Shown one piece after another: positions 1 through 11,825 of a DNA stretch of 11,825 nucleotides; positions within the stretch are counted from its first letter, which is position 1; the number at the start of each line of letters is the position of its first letter. Below the pieces are notes generated by a model. It was not told the origin of the DNA. It saw only the letters and a list, made by a program, of their open reading frames with translations, and did no database searches. This stretch comes from Selaginella moellendorffii (Eukaryota > Plantae > Lycopodiophyta): NCBI RefSeq assembly GCF_000143415.4, contig NW_003314594.1, positions 1 through 11,825 on the forward strand. The letters run 5' to 3'. The position numbers and the translations under genes are program-made.

Positions 1-5
<5 letters not shown>

Positions 6-36
<31 letters not shown>
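6..36. repeat. (CT)15 microsatellite
   Basis: Perfect CT dinucleotide run read directly from the sequence. Confidence 0.97.
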
Positions 37-40
<4 letters not shown>

Positions 41-447
41 ATCCTGTGAAGAGCTTCATATGGATAACAACATTTTTGTAAATAGTATCATATAGGCACT
101 AAACAACAGACATAAAGGAACTCAGAAGCAATCAGTCTTCTAAGCATCTTATCCTCCGGCATCAAATGTTGGATCAGTGATGTCCTTTTTGAAGTCTCGC
201 TTGTTGTTTGAGGTGGGCACGTGCTCCTATTGGTGTTCATGGGGTGTTGCAAAGCTGTGGGCTCTCAATGCAAAGGGGATTTCCTTGGCAAAAGAGCTTG
301 AAAATTTGGTGTGCTGTTTTTCTTGTTCTACCATTTTGTTTTACATGAGACATGTAGGAAATCCTGAGCTCAAAAGTTCACTAAGATTCATTTGCATAAA
401 CTACACTTTGGCAGAAAAATTATAACATTTATTACAAAATACAATAA

Positions 448-1035
448 TCAGTTAAAAACAACCCATTCATCATCGAATGGATCTAGGACGTACAATTTGC
501 CTTGCTTCTCCACACATTGTCCAATATTCCAGCGATGGATAACTTTGGTAAAATCCACACACTTTGACAGCGCAAGAAGGAACGGGGTTACATCTGCCAA
601 GAAGTGGTCATCCTTTGACCCCTCAAACTTTGGAGCCACCACCACGCTCTCTTGATGACCTTGGTAGAAGTCAATAATGTCATCCAGTGCCACCACCCGC
701 TTGAAATCCCGAAACCCTACATGGTCAAGATTCTTGACTTTCGTCCCGTCCTTTAGAACAACGCAATTGCCACCATGTAGCCTCCTCGACACAAGCCCCC
801 CAGTAGGATCCAGATGGTCAACCACAAGGTTGACATACTTCTCCTGGGCGGCACTAAACACCACGATATCGTACACTTTTGAAACCTTCCCCAGAAATTC
901 ATCTACGCCTGGTCTCTTCATGATGTGGAGTGGTGCATCATCGTCGAATTCCATGCTGAAACTCACAGAAGAGACGAGATCCTTATGAGCGTATACCAGT
1001 GTATTGTCTAGATCGAGAATGAGTGTCTTCTTCAT
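448..1035 (-). CDS. FCP1/SCP-like (NIF domain) HAD-family small CTD phosphatase, 195 aa, intronless, catalytic domain only
   Basis: The ORF has the ordered family motifs KKTLILDLDNTLV (DxDxT motif I), KRPGVDEFL, YDIVVFSA (motif II), LDP, SRRL..NC, VKNL (motif III Lys), RDFKRVVALDD (motif IV) and F.G..DD..L..VTPFL. It starts at ATG with no stops or frameshifts. Confidence 0.92.
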   Translation of the reverse strand: MKKTLILDLDNTLVYAHKDLVSSVSFSMEFDDDAPLHIMKRPGVDEFLGKVSKVYDIVVFSAAQEKYVNLVVDHLDPTGGLVSRRLHGGNCVVLKDGTKVKNLDHVGFRDFKRVVALDDIIDFYQGHQESVVVAPKFEGSKDDHFLADVTPFLLALSKCVDFTKVIHRWNIGQCVEKQGKLYVLDPFDDEWVVFN

Positions 1036-1461
1036 GATACCCTAAAAAATGACTCGTATTCCGTGGAAATGTAGAAGGGCCACAAAAGGTGACCAAAGGT
1101 GCCACGTCTGCCCTAAACTCTATCCGACGTGGCCTTTTTGTATTCTTGTACCCTACTATTGGCAAAGCCCAAGGGAGCCGGAGGAGCGCGTCGATCCTCA
1201 ATGCAGCTTAGATTCCAAATCTAGGGCTGCCGTGATCGTCTGGCAAGGGCAGAGGTGAGTGCGCTGCTGGTTTGCGGCCTACTGTTGGCGAGGCGGAAGG
1301 AGGTGAGCATGCAATTGTAGCAAGTTTGTTGTGAATCCATTGACGGACAGCTGATGTGCGCATTCTAGGCTCCAGCCGTTGGATAAGTGCAGTAACGACT
1401 CCTCAATCTCTTTTGTGCTTTCAGCAACGACTCACAATGTTAACACTGACCAGAGTCCACC
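1036..1461. promoter_or_regulatory. Putative bidirectional promoter and kinase 5'UTR; inverted ABRE/G-box-like pair GCCACGTC (1101-1108) and GACGTGGC (1126-1133)
   Basis: This 426-bp interval separates the divergent ATGs. The two 8-mers are exact reverse complements containing the ACGTGGC ABRE core. Strong donors at 1255 (AG|GTGAGT) and 1303 (AG|GTGAGC) and a polypyrimidine acceptor ending at 1424 suggest 5'UTR intron(s). The kinase ATG lies in CCACCATGG context. Confidence 0.55.
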
Positions 1462-2877
1462 ATGGAGAGGAAGAGAGCTGCTGGTCCGAAGAAACTACAC
1501 ACTCAGAAGCGATCCGACGTCATGCTCGAAAGGACCCGCCCACTGGATCCGATTAACCGAGCTCGATCAGGTTGGTCAAAACTTGAAACATCTGCACTTG
1601 TCTGACGAAGATCCTCGTTGAAGCAGGAGCAGGAGAAACTGATCATGATGCATCCGCGTTGCAGGCTGCTCCTGACGCTGGTACGAAGAATTCCTTTTGT
1701 TGGCTGACACGACTCTTTGCTGGTTTGATTCATGACTTGCAGAATATGTTCGGCAATTCCTCGCAATGGCGCAACGCTTGGAGAGATTCAAGATGCTCTC
1801 GGCGAATGTTGTGACCGGGATCGTGGAATCGATCCAAAAGGGAGGGGAGACTCTAGTTGCAGCAGCAGGTGGATACAATAATTTCTCTCTTTGGCATCTT
1901 TTCGCTTCTGAGTGGCCCCTTGTCTCTCTTGTCCAGGCCGCTTCTGCAGCAGCTACGAAGTGCTCGCTTGTGTTGGCCAGGGGGCGTCCGGGAAAGTATA
2001 CAAGTGCCGTAGCAAGGAGGACGAACAAATCTACGCCATCAAAGTCATCAAGGTTCGCACAGCAACGAAGTCCAGAGACCAGGATGTCGCGCTCGTCTTC
2101 AAGGAGGGAGAGATGCTCCAGCGCTGCGAACACCCCAACATAGTCAAATACTTCGACATGTGGAAGGAGGAAGGCGAGCCGGGCAAGTCGAAAGTGTACA
2201 TTGTCATGGAGTTTTGTGGCCGCTCGCTCCAGTCGGTGCTCCTCGGCGGTGAGTCACCACCTGCAGATGCGTTTAGGCAGCTTCTTCAAGCTGTGGCGCA
2301 TGTGCACGACAACGTGGGTGTTCATCGGGATATAGCACCACACAACATCTTCGTCACAGACGATGGACGCATCAAGCTGGGAGATTTCGGTCTTGGTAGG
2401 CAAATGAAACATCTCTTCCATCTCTCATTTGTTGGCTTACAGCTAAAAATAAGGAGTCCATGCTCGAGACCGAAAATATCAAGAAGGGGAGAGCAGTTTA
2501 CTACTCTCCCCAGCGCCGGAGCAACTCAACCTACACTGACATGCTTGCGCTTGGAGTTATACTCTTCGAACTTCATTGGAGGTGTCCCCCGGACCAGGTT
2601 TGGCTGCAGTTTGTGCAACGTGCTTGCTTAGTTTGGTGAATCTGTGTAGGAAAGGGAGTCGGTATTGATTGACGTCCGGGATGGCGTTTTACCAGCAGAC
2701 TGGGCGTACCAACACCCATCAATTGCGCCCAAGGTGTTGGAGCTGGTCGCAGCAAGACGCGACCAGCGTCCATCCGCGCGCGACATCCTCTGCGATCCTG
2801 CCTGGCAATCTGTTTGGTGAGTTTCTTTCATTACTCTGATTCTCTGCTTGGCTTCTAACATGTCTGTTTGCAGCTGA
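1462..2877 (+). CDS. Spliced Ser/Thr protein kinase, GCN2/eIF2-alpha-kinase (PEK)-like, ~357 aa; exons 1462-1570, 1627-1680, 1743-1868, 1937-2395, 2443-2597, 2650-2816, 2874-2877 (or exon 6 read through to TGA at 2818-2820)
   Basis: Manual splicing at GT-AG introns of 56, 62, 68, 47, 52 and 57 bp gives one open frame. It contains GQGASGKV, YAIK, alphaC Glu (KEGEML), HPNIVKYFDMWKE, VYIVMEFC, FRQLL, HRDIAPHNIF, GDFGLAK, YYSPQ, DMLALGVILFEL, ERESVL, LPADW and QRPSARDIL. The C-lobe appears only after splicing, which supports the model. N-terminal exons 1-2 are less certain than exons 4-6. Confidence 0.88.
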
Positions 2878-3187
2878 TCGTTGTAGTTGTTTAGATTTAC
2901 TTGCTCCTTTTTGTCATCTTTGTAGTCTTGGTCTTTTTCAGCATGCTGATTTCGATTCAGAAATATGAATTCGTTGCCAGTTCATTGCATTTCTGCCAGG
3001 CCGAGTTGTTCTCGATCAAGGTTGCTGAACAACTCAAGGGCTTCCGACATTCTTGTAGTCAGGTTCGGTTCAAGGAACAGGATTGGTAAACAGCACATTG
3101 ACGGGAGATGCAACAGCGTGGTGTCCACGGCTGGCTTCTTGTAGGGTCCATGCATCTCACCTCAAGTGGGCAGAGATCGAGTGGAAG

Positions 3188-3438
3188 CTGGAGAGCTATC
3201 CCAATTCTCGGGAGATGCGATGAAGAAAATGGCGGGATTGTTGATTTTTGTAGAGAGAATATTCGCACCTTTGACCTGTTGACCTTTTTACAGGGAAACG
3301 TTTTCCTACAGGCCTTTCTGAATTGAATCCAAGGAACCTGGAAGTCAAAACAAGAGAGTAGCTTCAGAACACTCAAAAGCTCACCCCTGCAAGTTCTGTT
3401 GTGGTACAGGGTGAATGAGTTCCCCTTTTTTGACGAGT
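3188..3438 (-). other. Possible small spliced exons (3438-3385, 3337-3269, and one beginning at 3187) of an unidentified gene converging on the kinase
   Basis: Consensus splice sites on the minus strand (TTTTGCAG|, |GTGAGC, TTCCAG|, AAG|GTGCGA, CTCCAG|) define introns of 47 and 81 bp. One spliced frame reads LVKKGELIHPVPQQNLQGFLGFNSERPVGKRFPVKRSTGQS. No family was recognised. Confidence 0.3.
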
Positions 3439-3469
3439 CTGCAAAATTATAGAAAGGATGAGTCAAATG

Positions 3470-3480
3470 GAGAGAGAGAG

Positions 3481-3512
<32 letters not shown>
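3470..3512. repeat. Compound microsatellite (GA)6 + (AT)15
   Basis: Read directly from the sequence. Confidence 0.95.
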
Positions 3513-3515
<3 letters not shown>

Positions 3516-3910
3516 TTGATCCAGGTTTCTTGTTTTTTTCATACCTTGAGGAACCAATCGTTCAATTCTACTGATTTCTTTGCATACTTGAATGCAAAGA
3601 ATAACAAATAATGAAGCTAGGTGCTTGGTTAGATTGAGGCAAGTTTTCAAATAGCTAGAACAATCTTTAGCTCTTTTAAGTTGTTTAGTGTTTAACCATC
3701 ATGACATCAATCTTAAAACATGTCCAGAAGTTGGATTTTGTGCCCTCTAGATTAATGATGTTAATTTTAGACTCTTTGTCAGTGTTAATCCTTGTAATTT
3801 ATAGGATAATATAGAGTTTCTCATATATTGTTTTTCAAATTTTACTTGATACTCTTCCAGTTCTAGATATGAGGCAAAATAAAGAACTTCATAGTTTTTA
3901 TATGAAAACT

Positions 3911-6191
3911 TTAAAGTTGCAAATCATTATGACCGCCATATTCAGTCTCCTCGCCATTGGCACCAACAGTGTTGACATTCTCATGGCCATCATCTTTGTC
4001 ATTCGGCATGTCTTCATTGTTGCCTCTTGTAGCTTCTTGGTGGGTTGGTGTATAATTTGGCATCTCTAATTCCCAAGGACAAGCTTGCTTTATTGCCGCT
4101 GGAAACTTCATTGTTGTCGGGTACATGCCTCCATCTCTCACACCATGCTTTAGGAGTCGTGTGCATACCGGTGTTTCGAGAGAAATACCTCTATATTAGA
4201 GATACCTATAATAGAATATAAACAAATTGAGTATAGTTGAGAAATTGTATGTTACTTAAAAGCCGCTCGACGCATGAAGTAAAGTTGGCCAAGTTGTTTA
4301 TCAAATGGAGTCGTGCTTGTGGCCTTCTTTGGCAGCCAGTCCTCTCCAAGTTTTATAAGCTTAGTGGTGATGAAGTCCTTGAATGGAAATTGCTCAAGAT
4401 CATCCCCTATAAAAGGTGCTAGACACATCTCCCCTTCATATACAGTTAGTGAAATGTAGACGGTCCTCCTCATCACAGTCTCCATTATACTGTCCAAACC
4501 TTTTTCTCCTTCCCTGAGTCTGTTATTAAGGTTGTTGAGAATGTGTATCTATTCCTCATATGTAAGCTTTGACTTTGAGATGTTGTAAATAATCTCATCT
4601 GGAGTCTTGCCCACTAAGAAATAACTTTTGTGAGTAACCTTCATGTAAACGCAAACAATACTTACTTTCATGACAAGAAATTTCTATTATAATATCAAAC
4701 CACTCCTTTGGGCGTCGAGGGTCAGCCACACTAAGTAATTTCTTTACCTTTGTCTTCGATGCGACTATGCATATGCATCTTGCTTAACCTTCACCAATGG
4801 CTGAAGATAACACAAACATTCTATGATAAGAAGTATACTTGGAAGAACATACCTTACTCCACATAGCTGTTATAAAAGCCATTGGATTCTTGTACCATCT
4901 ATTAGCATCTTGACGACCTCGATGATGCCGAATAAGTGATGCTAAATCATCACCATAGTGGCTGCAGACTGCATCCTCGTCGAGATTGGCAAGAAACCGG
5001 ATTTGCTCAATATCATGTACTAGGCTTCGTTTCTGCACTGCAAACTATCCTAACTTGCAAAACACAAATTGTTAAAAGTGATTGAAGAGGGAGTGGTACC
5101 TATGCATTAATTTTGTGGCAAGCTATCACAAGCCTTGCCACATCTAGAGATCCTCTCGTATGTACATGTCCAACCGAAACATTGATGTGATAGACAGGAT
5201 TGTCTCGGAAGCATTCATTGATGCACTTTATCTACGCACACTAGCGATGATTCCCGTCGATAATGTAGAACATTTTCCCCACAAATTGTTGAGTCTCAAG
5301 ATGGCTCATAAGCATGTTGTCAAATTTGCGGGACTTCATTTTCCAAATGTCATCCCAAACCCTCTCGATTTCTGGTGACACCGAGAGGGTATTTGTCGTT
5401 CTTGGCTTGAAGACCGAAACAAGGAACATACCTATGTTTGTCCCAAGGCCATTATGTTTGTACAGACTATAGATGTTCATGTTGATGAAGTGTGGTGAAG
5501 CAGACCGAATGATGCTTGTCTGAGTGAATCGACATAGTGGGATTTCTCGGATTATGTCTCCCGGGCCTTCCCACTTGAGAAACTCTAGAGTCGTGTGAAT
5601 GGCCTTTTCTTTGGTTCTCAAAACTGTCTCTTGGAAGCGCTTGTCTACAATGTGTTTAAGTAACTCCACTTCTCTTTCAGCTTCAGCTACACCTCCAGTA
5701 GCACCATTATCAGATCTAGCCCTCAACTTGAGCCTAACACCCCCGTCAGGCGCACTTGGGCACTACTTTGTAATGTAGTTAGTTTCTGCCATATTTTGTG
5801 AATATGTTAAGAGTAGTGGCATTTGTGGTTGTGACTGCAATGGTAGTGACGACAATCGCGCTGCTGGTGGTGATGATGGTGGCGGTAGTGGTGGTAATAA
5901 TGGCGATGATGGCATTGGTGGTAATGGTGGTGATGACGGTGGTGGTAATGGTGGTGATGAAGGTAGAGGTGGCAATGGTGGTGGCAGTGGTAATGGTGGT
6001 GGTGGCATCGATGGTGGTGGTGGCAAAAATGGGGGTGCATGTGGACTAGAGCTATCTGGTTGTGAAGACGGCAGAGTTGTCGCTGTGGAAATCTCTATCT
6101 GAAGGTCAACTTGATTGTCGTCTTGGATCTCATCTTCCTCATGTCTTCTCTTTGATCCAACATCCTTCTCCTTTTGTAGTTGCTTTCGTTT
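3911..6191 (-). pseudogene. Multi-exon pseudogene with a basic/acidic N-terminus, Pro-rich tract and ParB/Sulfiredoxin-like domain (GKMFYIIDGNHR); probably transposon-borne
   Basis: ORFs 5763-6344 and 5241-5726 share a frame and are split by a single TAG (5763-5765). The frame continues past DGNHR through TAGs at 5241-5243 and 5232-5234 (DGNHR*CA*IKCINECF...KINA). Further coding-like segments at 4784-5038, 4252-4600 (TAG at 4549-4551) and 3911-4141 are separated by short GT-AG intron-like spacers such as 4852-4801. An acceptor lies at 6193-6192. YIIDGxHR matches the ParB/Srx catalytic signature. Confidence 0.65.
5850..6040 (-). repeat. Degenerate (CCA)n trinucleotide tract encoding poly-proline (PPLPPPSS-like units)
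   Basis: GGT/TGG-rich on the plus strand. It is in frame with the DGNHR pseudogene and explains the spurious poly-Val and poly-His ORFs. Confidence 0.9.
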
Positions 6192-6232
6192 CTGAAAATA
6201 ATATAAATTAAAAATGCATAAGAAGCGAGGAC

Positions 6233-6688
6233 TTTGGGGCGTGGACTTGGCGTAGGAGCTGGTTCGCTGGCGAACTAGCCCTCCTCCCAATGCCAAGTCC
6301 AAGTGCCCTGGCTGGGCATTTGGCGCGGGTCGATTCGCTGGCAAACCGGCCCTCCTCCCAGCACCAAGTCCAACTGCCTAGGTCGGGCACTTGACGTGGG
6401 CCGGCCAAGGTGCTTGGGGGAGGGCCGGTTCGCCAGCGAACTGGCCCGCCCCCAAGCGCCTTGGCCGGCCTGCCCCCAAGTGCCTTTGCCGGCCCCGCGC
6501 AGAGTGCCTGGCCTGGGCACTTGGCACAGGCACTTGGCACGGGTGCCGATTCGCTGGTGTACCGATGGCCTGCCCGGGCGGAGTGCCGGGCCAAATGCCC
6601 GGCCTGGGCACTTGGCAGCGGTGGTGCTGGGCAGCGGTGGCCCTGGGCAGTGGCAGCCCTGGGCAGTGGCGGCGCTGGGCATGGCATG
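6233..6688. repeat. GC-rich complex repeat array with direct and inverted units, running into an assembly gap
   Basis: A ~45-bp unit TTCGCTGGC.AAC..GCCCTCCTCCCA...CCAAGTCCAA.TGCC occurs at 6263-6307 and 6334-6378, with an inverted copy at ~6411-6441. There are repeated GGCACTTGGCA motifs and ~16-bp CTGGGCAGYGGYRGCC-like tandem units from ~6610 to the gap. Confidence 0.85.
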
Positions 6689-7257
6689 NNNNNNNNNNNN
6701 NNNNNNNNNNNNNNNNNNNNNNNNNNNNNNNNNNNNNNNNNNNNNNNNNNNNNNNNNNNNNNNNNNNNNNNNNNNNNNNNNNNNNNNNNNNNNNNNNNNN
6801 NNNNNNNNNNNNNNNNNNNNNNNNNNNNNNNNNNNNNNNNNNNNNNNNNNNNNNNNNNNNNNNNNNNNNNNNNNNNNNNNNNNNNNNNNNNNNNNNNNNN
6901 NNNNNNNNNNNNNNNNNNNNNNNNNNNNNNNNNNNNNNNNNNNNNNNNNNNNNNNNNNNNNNNNNNNNNNNNNNNNNNNNNNNNNNNNNNNNNNNNNNNN
7001 NNNNNNNNNNNNNNNNNNNNNNNNNNNNNNNNNNNNNNNNNNNNNNNNNNNNNNNNNNNNNNNNNNNNNNNNNNNNNNNNNNNNNNNNNNNNNNNNNNNN
7101 NNNNNNNNNNNNNNNNNNNNNNNNNNNNNNNNNNNNNNNNNNNNNNNNNNNNNNNNNNNNNNNNNNNNNNNNNNNNNNNNNNNNNNNNNNNNNNNNNNNN
7201 NNNNNNNNNNNNNNNNNNNNNNNNNNNNNNNNNNNNNNNNNNNNNNNNNNNNNNNNN
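6689..7257. other. Assembly gap
   Basis: N run. Confidence 1.
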
Positions 7258-7270
7258 AGTTAGTTGATGG

Positions 7271-7541
7271 TAGATCCTAGAATAAAATCATTCATATCTT
7301 TCATATTATGGCATATGCTTGAGGTGATATTTCTTTCCGTTCTACCAAAAGTTAGTCCATATAATAAATTTGAGCATGTTTTTGAATTCAATGTATACAG
7401 ACTTTTAATATTGTACAACATAGTCCTATATACTTCATATAGAATTTATTATAACAACATTATTCAATGTTAGATCCTAGAATAAAATCGCCCTTTCTTT
7501 TCACATAATGGCATAGCACATGTTTGAGGTGACATTTCTTT
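7271..7541. repeat. Imperfect ~66-71-bp direct repeat with 200-bp period (7271-7336 and 7471-7541)
   Basis: TAGATCCTAGAATAAAATC is identical at 7271 and 7471, followed by similar ...ATGGCATA...TTGAGGTGAYATTTCTTT in both copies. Confidence 0.85.
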
Positions 7542-7578
7542 ATAAAAGTTTAAAGTTCCAAAACTTAAAGGCAACAAA

Positions 7579-9480
7579 ATGGAGAGTTTCCTTTTGCATT
7601 ACCAAAATCACCCACCGCTTTTTTTCTCTCAAAGTCTTATTTCAGAAAGTTTTCTTTGCCGACGTTTTGATCTTTCTCTCAGTTCTATTTCATTGGAGGC
7701 TGTGATTCGCAACAACATTGGTGTAGTTGAACAATCGGAGTTTCTTCTTTTAGGTGTAGGTGAAGGTGGACAACATTGGGATTTGCAACATTCCAAGTCA
7801 AAGGAGATTCGAGTTTTTGGATCTCCAATTAAAGTGCGAGGCTACAATCCTGCCAAAGTGAATGTGAAGCAAGATTCGGTCGTCATCATTTCTTCCTATT
7901 CTAGTTCTAATGGAGATTTTAGTCTAGTGCAAGCTAAGAATTTCCAAACTCGAACTTCACTGATATTCAAAGTTGTTTGCAATGCTTTCCAGTTTTCGCA
8001 CCTCTCTATTGTGTGTTCCTTTCTGGATAGGCCCGTTAGCGAGCTCCCATCTACATACAATGGCAATATCTTCTTTGAACTACCACCTTTTGTCAGCTCA
8101 AAACAAAAGGGGATGGAGACGAAGCAGGACTTCACAACTGGTGCAAGATAAGACCACNNNNNNNNNNNNNNNNNNNNNNNNNNNNNNNNNNNNNNNNNNN
8201 NNNNNNNNNNNNNNNNNNNNNNNNNNNNNNNNNNNNNNNNNNNNNNNNNNNNNNNNNNNNNNNNNNNNNNNNNNNNNNNNNNNNNNNNNNNNNNNNNNNN
8301 NNNNNNNNNNNNNNNNNNNNNNNNNNNNNNNNNNNNNNNNNNNNNNNNNNNNNNNNNNNNNNNNNNNNNNNNNNNNNNNNNNNNNNNNNNNNNNNNNNNN
8401 NNNNNNNNNNNNNNNNNNNNNNNNNGGGGAAACTCCAATAAAAAATCAACTCAATCCTTGAACTAAAATGGATTTATCCCTACGAGTTTATCCACCTTAT
8501 CAAGCCAGATTTCCAATTAGCATTTAAAGAGTTGTGCAAACAATGGCAGGCTGTACCTTCTGAAGAAGAGCACAAGGCAAAAACAAACAAGATTTGAATG
8601 TGGTGGCATAAAAATAGCCATACTGACGTAAGTTGTCTACCACAACTTGAGTCATGGTTGGGGTGGTGGGAAGTTAGAATGTTCTAATGGGGACATAACT
8701 CTTTTCAGATTGGTTTTTCTTTTTTTCCTCTCTTTTTATTGCTTTTTAATATCATCTTTTTATAAGGATCAACTACTTAAAGATCTTGCATACACCCCAA
8801 CTTTGAATCTCTCAGAGAGTAAATATTGGAGCTGGCATTCCTCTGAGGCAGGGAAAGGGAAAATGAGTCTATATGAAACATGTCTATCAAATTTGATACA
8901 CGTTGTAGAGCAGCCTTCAAAATCCTTGGCATTTGAGGAAGGAAGATACATGGGAACAGGACTTTCGGTTGAGATGTTACAAGAAGAAAGTGACTCCACC
9001 AGCACAAACAGTGGCAACTGCAGTGGAGGAAGTGGTCCGTGGAACATCTATGGAGTACACTCCCCAGGCTTCTATTGGTGATATGAAGACCGTCCGCTCA
9101 AAGCGTCGCTTTTCCTTTGTTGGTGAAGATGTTAGCACAGATCTTGGAGCAAAAAGCTCTCACAAGCTTGATGTTGAGTATCATTCTGCTCCAAGACATC
9201 ACCCCCGAACCGAGCCACCTCAAGTGGCTGATGAAGAAAGTGCATCACAGCAAGTTGAAATTGCTTATCGTAGCATAGAGCCGAAGCAATGGGCAATCCA
9301 TCGAGTGCCAGCAAAATCAAATGTAAGGTGTGTGGGGATGCTTTTGAGAGGCAAGTGTTGGGCTTGGATCCGTGGTGACAAGTCTGCTTCTATTCCAGCC
9401 CCATATTTTTATGGGGAACGAAAGCAAGTAGAATTTTCAAGATGGTGTTGGTTATATTGCTACAACATTGATGTCAACAA
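7579..9480 (+). pseudogene. Degenerate MULE/Mutator-like DDE transposase (partial, interrupted by gaps, stops and frameshifts)
   Basis: The segments in order are: LPSTYNGNIFFELPP...GMETKQD, which frameshifts into HNWCK (WRKY/GCM1-like D-G-x-x-W-x-K position); a helical Trp-rich segment HLIKPDFQLAFKELCKQW...KI*MWW...LESWLGWWEVRMF*WG from 8493 (TGA 8595, TAA 8685); TPTLNLSESKY (Glu at 8815-8817), resembling the MULE T-N-x-x-E-S-x-H/N catalytic-Glu motif; and a Cys/Trp-rich C-terminal region WAIHRVP...C...KC...PAP.F.G...YC. The two catalytic Asp are not visible and may lie in the 8158-8425 gap or be deleted. Confidence 0.6.
8158..8425. other. Assembly gap
   Basis: N run. Confidence 1.
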
Positions 9481-10258
9481 NNNNNNNNNNNNNNNNNNNN
9501 NNNNNNNNNNNNNNNNNNNNNNNNNNNNNNNNNNNNNNNNNNNNNNNNNNNNNNNNNNNNNNNNNNNNNNNNNNNNNNNNNNNNNNNNNNNNNNNNNNNN
9601 NNNNNNNNNNNNNNNNNNNNNNNNNNNNNNNNNNNNNNNNNNNNNNNNNNNNNNNNNNNNNNNNNNNNNNNNNNNNNNNNNNNNNNNNNNNNNNNNNNNN
9701 NNNNNNNNNNNNNNNNNNNNNNNNNNNNNNNNNNNNNNNNNNNNNNNNNNNNNNNNNNNNNNNNNNNNNNNNNNNNNNNNNNNNNNNNNNNNNNNNNNNN
9801 NNNNNNNNNNNNNNNNNNNNNNNNNNNNNNNNNNNNNNNNNNNNNNNNNNNNNNNNNNNNNNNNNNNNNNNNNNNNNNNNNNNNNNNNNNNNNNNNNNNN
9901 NNNNNNNNNNNNNNNNNNNNNNNNNNNNNNNNNNNNNNNNNNNNNNNNNNNNNNNNNNNNNNNNNNNNNNNNNNNNNNNNNNNNNNNNNNNNNNNNNNNN
10001 NNNNNNNNNNNNNNNNNNNNNNNNNNNNNNNNNNNNNNNNNNNNNNNNNNNNNNNNNNNNNNNNNNNNNNNNNNNNNNNNNNNNNNNNNNNNNNNNNNNN
10101 NNNNNNNNNNNNNNNNNNNNNNNNNNNNNNNNNNNNNNNNNNNNNNNNNNNNNNNNNNNNNNNNNNNNNNNNNNNNNNNNNNNNNNNNNNNNNNNNNNNN
10201 NNNNNNNNNNNNNNNNNNNNNNNNNNNNNNNNNNNNNNNNNNNNNNNNNNNNNNNNNN
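9481..10258. other. Assembly gap
   Basis: N run. Confidence 1.
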
Positions 10259-10618
10259 GAGCATATGTACCATCACAGTTTTTTTTTTTCCCTTTCAAAT
10301 GGTTATATGGCCTTATATAGAATCTTAATTCAAATTTAATAATTTTAAAATTCTAATGAACTTGACATTTACTAGCTAGAAAGCACAGAGTACAAATTTA
10401 AAGAAGTGACAAGAATACTCTTTTTGCAAACATTTTATTTTATGTTCTAACAAACGTCTCTATCATTGCATGTAGTAAATATTTAAATTATTCAAACAAG
10501 AAGTGTCCTTTAGAACATTTTTATCTATATAATATATAAAGAGTTATGAAATTATTAAGTTCACCATAACTTTAAAATTTTAAAGTTTATAATGTTTGTA
10601 CTAAATTATAATTGAAAA

Positions 10619-10662
10619 TTGAGCTCAACTCATGAGCTCAACTGTTCAACTCGTGAGCTCAA
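10619..10662. repeat. Cluster of three TGAGCTCA palindromes within a 17-bp direct repeat (TCAACTCRTGAGCTCAA x2)
   Basis: TTGAGCTCAA at 10619-10628; 17-mers at 10625-10641 and 10646-10662 differ at one base. Confidence 0.8.
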
Positions 10663-11825
10663 GTATGGTCTGCGCTCTGGATCGGGAAGTTATTAATTAT
10701 TTTTGTTTTATTTCTAATCTAGATGTAATATAAAATAAATAAGGAAGTATACAGTAACTTAAAAATGAATTTTGCTTACAGCATTATTTATTATATAGCT
10801 AGCAATATAATAATAATAATAAATAAATTTGCTCTAAATTATAAATAAATTATAAGAAAATATGTCTCTGATATATTATTTTTCAATTATAGTTAATCAC
10901 TTGGATCCCTTGGAAATGATGAACTTCAAAAGATTACACAATGGCTAGTGCAAAATTTGTTTTATAATCTTGTTGTAGAGTAACTAATAGAGCAACAATA
11001 GTATGCATAGCATTTTTAGTTTACTTTAGAAAATATAGTGTAAAGCATATACCTAAAATATTTAATATATAATAAAATATTCCTCATTCTAAGGGTTATA
11101 ATTTCTTGCTGTTAAACTTTTCTATAATTCATTTTTATCAAGATTTAATTCTAATATTCTTGGGGGATGGGGAGGGGGGACAGCTTCCTATTAGGTGTGT
11201 CTATCTTTATTTTACATTTGGCTTAGGTCTAAGCTTAAGATCCATACCATGTTAGCTAGTGGAGTATTTATATCCTTGCGCTAGACCATTAATATGTTGA
11301 AATAATGCTTTAGCTTTGTTTTACATGTTTGTTTTAATGTTGGGATGCTAAAAGTTTTAAGACTATTTTAATGTTGTTTTGTGCTCCTGTTTCATCGCTC
11401 CTTAGTTGCATATTCAAGAGTTGTTCCATACTTTTATTTTTTTGTTCATTAGGCATATGCTTAGAAGTTTGATTCTATCATTTTGTTTAGTGGCCTAAGG
11501 CCCTAAAACTTAGGTGTTGCCCTTAGCACACATATCTCAAAAGTTAGGTCTGTTCCATTGCTATCCTATAGTAATTAAAAGGTGAAAATCATATATGCTA
11601 TAGATATAAAGATGATTTTGTCTTAAGTATATGCTAGAAGATAAAGAAGATTTTATCTTGAAGCATATGCTAAAAGATAACCATGCAAAGTAAAAGAGGA
11701 TCCATATCAAAAGGTGGTAATATACCCATACAAACAATAATTTGATAGATATAAAGGAATTTAAAGTGCTCAACCATATGTTGTGTGGCATCAGAATTAA
11801 TAATAAGAGTAAAAAACAACTAATA

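Follow-up and report, generated by a model that had tools for sequence, protein, structure and literature searches.

The 11,825-nt stretch of the lycophyte Selaginella moellendorffii genome analyzed here (contig NW_003314594.1, positions 1 to 11,825; hereafter the window) carries two divergently oriented genes, one for a NIF-type HAD phosphatase (448-1035, minus strand) and one for a sensor-less kinase of the eIF2-alpha kinase (PEK) family (1462-2877, plus strand). The pairing of these genes is inherited, not accidental; neither a shared switch nor a poison-antidote system is demonstrated. Our model, to which we give an even chance, is that the window is one of several copies of a block that was amplified recently in the S. 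moellendorffii genome, whose two genes are ancestrally linked and would encode loosely coupled antagonists, with no strict cis antidote. According to this model, the two lineages of the kinase family, A (the window type) and B, each adjoin a NIF phosphatase of a Selaginella-restricted group, and this linkage is ancestral. The phosphatase would be, or would ancestrally have been, no more than loosely coupled, as an antagonist either to the kinase or to the kinase's substrate, and it may be dispensable in any single copy because other copies can act in trans.

The initial annotation of this region described two intact, divergent enzymes of opposing chemistry. This description was confirmed: the coordinates 448, 1035, 1462 and 2877 are exact, the spacer between the two ATG codons measures 426 bp, and the genes encode a Pfam NIF phosphatase and a Pfam Pkinase, both with RefSeq models. 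Both proteins were also said to have diverged from their housekeeping relatives, and both are indeed lineage-specific versions of their families. That they are close to bare catalytic domains is correct for the phosphatase (195 aa); the kinase also carries an N-terminal extension of about 100 aa.

The phosphatase coding sequence is an intronless, uninterrupted open reading frame. Its product matches the full NIF domain (PF03031 positions 1-159 of 160, E 1.7e-36) and is 99% identical to the RefSeq 'probable phosphatase PSR2' (P0001). Human SCP1, 2 and 3 are its closest solved relatives (E 6e-20), SCP1 being the best, and its motifs DLDNT, VVFSAA, KVKNL and ALDD align with DLDET, VLFTAS, YVKDL and ILDN of SCP1. 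The nucleophile motif DLDNT occupies residues 8-12 and is accompanied by the motif II Ser, the motif III Lys and the DD of motif IV; these HAD catalytic motifs are invariant across four aligned Selaginella NIF paralogs. The protein thus resembles SCP1/CTDSP, the plant SSPs, yeast Psr1/Psr2 and CTDNEP1/Dullard in having the full NIF domain, DxDxT and motifs II-IV, and it has the size of a bare catalytic domain. Unlike those families, it falls in a long-branch, Selaginella-restricted group; at 112.8 bits the window protein stays under the NCBIfam subfamily cut-offs (139 bits), and its C-terminal tail is common only to the paralog P0004. We classify it as a diverged, lineage-specific enzyme of the NIF/SCP-type HAD family and a putative phospho-Ser/Thr phosphatase.

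The kinase was analyzed both by searching its exons individually and, for the whole protein, through the database records P0005 (358 aa) and P0406 (357 aa). Pfam finds Pkinase alone in this protein (aa 104-350 of 357/358). When the single sequence was compared with solved structures, HRI, PERK and GCN2 came first, by a narrow margin (HRI 106.8 vs 95.2 bits for NEK1). With a profile of both lineages, the top 14 matches in the PDB were all HRI, GCN2 or PERK (165-124 bits; HRI 165, GCN2 163 and PERK 151), and the first outsider was NEK1 at 124 bits. The B-lineage kinase P0129 alone retrieved PEK kinases in its first 17 matches to solved structures. The AlphaFold2 model of the window-type kinase (mean pLDDT, the predicted local distance difference test score, of 75) comprises a basic, disordered segment (residues 1-50), a helical segment (54-95) and then a confidently predicted kinase fold; in a Foldseek search with this model, all listed matches above rank 45 were GCN2, PERK or PKR. 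In addition, HMMER alignments place the alphaG segment ERESVLIDVRDGVLP in register, column by column, with the motifs of HRI and PERK. This motif docks eIF2-alpha in PEK kinases, as seen in the PKR/eIF2-alpha structures.

The catalytic domain therefore belongs with the eIF2-alpha kinases (PEK family), as the automatic NCBI name says. The 'GCN2-like' label of the initial annotation does not hold: because the protein has no regulatory domain (RWD, pseudokinase, HisRS-like or C-terminal domains), its architecture is not that of GCN2, and what it resembles is the PEK-type catalytic domain more broadly. With GCN2, PERK, HRI and PKR the kinase shares the catalytic domain by sequence, profile and predicted fold, the motif ERxxxLxxVRxxxxP of alphaG/subdomain X and a helical extension on the N-terminal side of the N-lobe. 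Unlike them, it has no RWD, pseudokinase, HisRS-like, dsRBD, luminal or haem domain and no beta4-beta5 insert, it shows the replacements of Lys by Ala in the catalytic loop, of APE by SPQ and of the activation-loop Thr by Arg, and in the collections searched its family occurs in S. moellendorffii only. We regard it, on these comparisons, as an orphan, diverged, sensor-less and lineage-specific PEK-type version. Plant kinome papers list a 'PEK_PEK' subfamily beside PEK_GCN2, and non-GCN2 PEK-like plant kinases are therefore already catalogued in general.

The evidence for an old linkage comes from the second lineage of this family. A HMMER search of 1.84 billion representatives divided the kinase family into the lineages A and B; beyond them, only multi-kinase fish PKR-like proteins and generic kinases were retrieved, at no more than 37% identity. 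Lineage B (P0129/P0275), also from S. moellendorffii, is 39% identical to A over about 300 aa, and in its 635-aa fusion protein the PEK-like kinase is joined to a domain of the Fumble/type II pantothenate-kinase family (aa 66-309, 214.7 bits). The B genes (L008:10001-12471, plus strand; L009/L010:11285-13755) are located on scaffold GL377674.1, where the B gene follows downstream, after 643 bp and in the same orientation, a gene for a NIF phosphatase of 213 aa with 38% identity to that of the window. This arrangement occurs in two tandem 12.9-kb repeats on the scaffold, and a third B copy abuts a contig end. The flanking genes differ, with 2OG-oxygenase and PPR genes at the A loci and VMP1-like and LRR genes at the B loci; the adjacency of NIF phosphatase and kinase is the sole feature shared by both, and its orientation has changed.

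Because the co-oriented B kinase also adjoins a NIF gene, the linkage is ancestral and the orientation is not conserved. The similar divergence of both partners fits a co-duplication of an ancestral pair. Chance adjacency, which had been put forward as the null explanation, is disfavored by the fact that the only other lineage of the kinase family is likewise linked to a NIF phosphatase: as the NIF family is small and the genome contains about 22,000 genes (a rough estimate), such an adjacency is very unlikely to have arisen twice by chance. The same B pair, co-oriented at 643 bp, speaks against a head-to-head shared promoter as the conserved feature. As for the phosphatases, a NIF profile scored the Selaginella paralogs (A, P0004, B1 and B2) at 226-353 bits, compared with at most 135 for other plants. 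In a maximum-likelihood tree, the Selaginella long-branch NIF sequences group together, with weak support (74/64) and a long-branch warning.

The Fumble domain of lineage B is a candidate enzyme-derived sensor, and by analogy could act as the HisRS-like domain does in GCN2. The likeness is that the B paralog fuses a metabolic-enzyme fold to a PEK-like kinase; the differences are that the fused enzyme family is another one and that the A-type gene of the window lost the Fumble domain or never had it. A tblastn search (E<=50) revealed no credible Fumble-domain relic upstream of the A-type kinase in the window. In the ESM Atlas we found generic kinase clusters only, and no cluster of at least 50 members combining Fumble and Pkinase.

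Lineage A has been amplified recently. In at least ten distinct loci, the kinase gene and a NIF coding sequence stand head-to-head, separated by spacers that differ from 426 bp by a few bases at most: the window, GL377730, GL377769, GL377821, GL377877, GL377738 (two copies), GL377684, GL377619 and GL377818. Identity across these loci is 99.4-99.9% for the kinase gene and 98.1-99.7% for the NIF coding sequence, and a kinase cluster at 90% identity contains 17 distinct sequences, with members on further scaffolds. The copied unit exceeds the pair, extending over 4-11 kb, with 2OG-oxygenase and PPR genes nearby. Recurrence among such near-identical copies represents recent block duplication and is therefore silent on function.

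Several A loci also hold NIF remnants. Several A-type kinases are followed, some 1.9 kb downstream, by second NIF copies that are 93-95% identical and lack 90 bp internally (L012:13292-13787, minus strand; L013:13275-13770; L018:7676-8171; L015:11377-11928 and 14993-15312), and GL377619.1 contains additional decayed NIF and kinase fragments. Together, these second copies and fragments indicate birth-and-death turnover of the cassette. A further NIF copy on GL377684.1 (L002:10001-11026), 92% identical, has no kinase beside it and is located near PPR and 2OG-oxygenase genes. Its N-terminus is foreign, its C-terminus has diverged and its nucleophile motif reads DLDNP where DLDNT is expected; it probably represents a partial duplicate in decay.

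We then compared selection on the two genes, using diversity and substitution counts from the ten aligned A cassettes. Nucleotide diversity (pi) is 0.0016 in the kinase exons, 0.0062 in the kinase introns, 0.0060 in the spacer and 0.0100 in the NIF coding sequence. The kinase exons contain fewer segregating sites than the introns and spacer (Fisher p 0.014) and fewer than the NIF coding sequence (p 0.0002). The kinase differs at 4 synonymous and 3 nonsynonymous sites; all three of the latter map to the N-terminal extension, and the kinase domain is free of them. The kinase is the constrained component, and the phosphatase behaves as dispensable in the recent copies, where other copies could supply its activity in trans.

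Several of our observations weigh against a functional coupling of the two genes. The NIF coding sequence, with 11 nonsynonymous and 6 synonymous differences, does not differ from neutral expectation (p 0.20), is at least as variable as the neighboring non-coding DNA (pi 0.010) and is frameshifted in 2 of the 10 cassettes, in both of which the kinase is intact. For three NIF paralogs (P0004, B2/P0395 and the L002 copy, which is degenerate), the surrounding 10 kb contain no kinase, the NIF tree joins long branches with a weak key node (74/64), and inherited adjacency needs no selection, the comparison of A with B being the single old one. On the side of the kinase, the Lys of the catalytic loop, the Glu of APE and the Thr of the activation loop are absent, which leaves activity and eIF2-alpha specificity uncertain. 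The two genes may be neighbors by descent only, an accidental adjacency having been copied by an old duplication and then by the recent amplification, with no functional relation. We consider this a serious alternative, somewhat short of even in probability. It would account for recent copies that are whole 4-11 kb blocks including the 2OG-oxygenase and PPR genes, for a NIF gene on which no purifying selection is seen when the copies are compared, two of them being disrupted, for the NIF paralogs that exist without kinases, and for the different orientations of the A and B pairs. Against it, the A and B loci share just these two genes despite a protein divergence of about 60% and the change of orientation, and at all assessable loci (10 A and 2 B) the kinase has a NIF neighbor.

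The same decay of the phosphatase bears on the proposal of the initial annotation that the pair could be a toxin-antidote-like cassette. In a selfish or immune cassette of this kind, a constitutively active, translation-arresting kinase would be checked by a cis-linked phosphatase. A cassette that is tightly linked, lineage-specific, multi-copy and spread over many small, repeat-rich scaffolds would suit such a role, and a kinase with neither a sensor domain nor the activation-loop Thr is compatible with constitutive activity. However, a neutrally evolving NIF gene, frameshifted beside an intact kinase, argues against a strict cis antidote: the supposed antidote decays in 2 of 10 copies next to the intact supposed toxin. 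In addition, the amplified unit is larger than the pair, and there is no evidence for toxicity, drive or presence/absence polymorphism. The proposal is thereby weakened, and we consider it very improbable. Marginally less improbable, in our opinion, is a lycophyte-specific module of the integrated stress response, in which a non-GCN2 eIF2-alpha kinase, ancestrally fused to a metabolite sensor derived from a pantothenate kinase (B), would later have been reduced to a bare constitutive kinase (A), with a dedicated HAD phosphatase resetting the kinase or eIF2-alpha. If this were true, land plants would gain a second type of eIF2-alpha kinase and an eIF2-alpha phosphatase that is not PP1. It is also unlikely, though a little less so, that the copy number reflects an artefact of assembly, in which two haplotypes and unplaced scaffolds would make a single true locus look like many. 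Over most of 11 kb, the window runs colinear with the loci L004 and L005 at 97-99%, and the three may be alleles or redundant scaffolds; however, one scaffold (GL377738.1) contains two copies, and those on GL377684.1, GL377619.1 and GL377730.1 differ in their flanks, downstream structure and extra NIF fragments.

The nature of the kinase must be weighed separately. Its catalytic loop, HRDIAPHN (window 2320-2343), has Ala where Ser/Thr kinases have Lys, and KKGRAVYYSPQ aligns with HRI ...GTCLYASPE, which puts Arg at the position of PKR Thr446 and replaces APE with SPQ. The beta4-beta5 insert is lacking, with about 11 residues between KYFDMW and VYIVMEF. Lineage B has kept the activation-loop Thr; its loop, HRDIAPKN (P0129 aa 269-276), has the same Ala. 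The departures seen in A, together with the Ala shared by B, would be expected if the protein were a pseudokinase, or a kinase with a substrate other than eIF2-alpha whose PEK resemblance reflects ancestry only, which we regard as unlikely, yet the least so of the alternatives after descent alone. Against this, the Gly-loop, the VAIK Lys, the alphaC Glu, the HRD Asp, the catalytic Asn and DFG are kept and do not vary between A and B, which share 39% identity; among the 10 copies, no nonsynonymous variant falls in the kinase domain; and the PEK alphaG motif for eIF2-alpha docking is present. The loop recalls the HRDLAARN of tyrosine kinases, with Ala followed two positions on by His (HRDIAPHN) or Lys (HRDIAPKN). 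Because the core catalytic residues are conserved across this divergence and the loop is tyrosine-kinase-like, we infer that the kinase is active with an atypical catalytic loop, and it would presumably be independent of activation-loop Thr phosphorylation. We hypothesize, from the family resemblance and the alphaG motif only, that its substrate is eIF2-alpha.

In our model of an inherited pair of putative antagonists, a parallel is found in the bacterial operons for eukaryotic-type Ser/Thr kinases (eSTKs) and phosphatases (such as Stk1/Stp1 and PknB/PstP), which likewise keep a Hanks-type kinase and its cognate Ser/Thr phosphatase as adjacent, inherited genes. In the bacterial operons, the phosphatases are of the PP2C type, the genes are co-transcribed and the antagonism has been demonstrated. 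Here, by contrast, the phosphatase is of the HAD type, the genome is eukaryotic, the orientation is variable and the coupling is putative. The pair thus allows one to ask how eukaryotic kinases and phosphatases become genomically coupled; if the linkage is only inherited, it provides a neat example of a lineage-specific block of genes that was amplified recently.

In flowering plants, GCN2 is the only recognizable eIF2-alpha kinase, and no gene was ever linked to the 'plant PKR' activity reported in the 1990s (PMC2504353). The sensor-less lycophyte PEK-type family offers a concrete object for asking about further eIF2-alpha kinases in early land plants, and it stands out by its old linkage to a HAD phosphatase, its sister lineage with a fused pantothenate kinase and the tyrosine-kinase-like Ala in its catalytic loop. 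Already known was the automatic RefSeq annotation of both genes; a literature search with gene and protein identifiers found no paper mentioning either gene. What is new is that the linkage to NIF is ancestral, that a sister lineage fuses Fumble and kinase, that both lineages share an atypical catalytic loop, and that the recent amplification goes with decay of the phosphatase.

The kinase gene consists of seven exons, from the ATG at 1462 to 2877, separated by six introns of 47-68 nt, all GT-AG. Exon 1 (1462-1570) encodes aa 1-36, which are basic and predicted to be disordered. Exon 2 starts at 1624 or 1627 and ends at 1680, and its alternative NAGNAG acceptors lead to isoforms of 358 or 357 aa: the tandem acceptor AAG|CAG| at 1621-1627 explains the RefSeq isoforms X1 (358 aa, P0005) and X2 (357 aa, P0406). 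Exon 3 (1743-1868) encodes the helical N-terminal extension, which is conserved with the linker of lineage B. Exon 4 (1937-2395) covers the N-lobe to DFG, with GQGASG, AIK, the alphaC Glu, HRDIAPHN and DFG, and its open reading frame matches Pfam Pkinase with E 7.7e-36. The short activation segment, with the Arg and SPQ described above, and alphaF are encoded by exon 5 (2443-2597). Exon 6 (2650-2816) carries alphaG, with the PEK-type motif ERxxVLxDVRDGxLP, and subdomain XI (RPSA). After an intron of 57 nt (GTGAGT...CAG), exon 7 (2874-2877) supplies the last base of the final Cys codon and the stop, and the proteins end in ...QSVC. The exon translations correspond to consecutive positions of P0406 (XP_024523820.1, 'eIF2-alpha kinase-like'), the NCBI protein of this scaffold.

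The spacer between the two start codons (1036-1461) presumably contains both promoters and the 5' untranslated region (UTR) of the kinase gene. GTGAGT at 1255 and GTGAGC at 1303 are candidate donors of 5'UTR introns, and the several RefSeq kinase transcript variants that encode one protein are compatible with introns at these sites. Among the ten copies, the diversity of the spacer (pi 0.0060) is close to that of the kinase introns, and the spacer therefore shows no extra conservation.

Two other origins of the cassette were considered and rejected. A giant-virus or viral-relic origin found no support in the viral_contigs collection, where a scan that reaches close relatives only gave no relative of either protein; the six spliceosomal introns of the kinase gene argue against a recent viral origin. 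As for a transposon-borne cassette, the inverted (CT)n/(GA)n match between 25-39 and 3467-3481 is of low complexity, and the homology to the other copies runs past it. Tracts of (CT)15 at 6-36 and (AT)15 at 3483-3512 flank the cassette, and the CT/GA match is no terminal inverted repeat.

The right two-thirds of the window is AT-rich, with no recognizable gene (seven open reading frames without a Pfam match), and no RNA family of Rfam was found there or elsewhere in the 11,825 nt. Assembly gaps (runs of N) occupy 6689-7257, 8158-8425 and 9481-10258. To the left of the first gap, the region 5763-6686 contains a proline-rich, minus-strand open reading frame of 193 aa, without a Pfam match, which overlaps a TGG-rich minisatellite (5865-6037) and GC-rich tandem repeats of 16-71 nt (6263-6686). 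This region is 89-97% conserved in other copies of the block.

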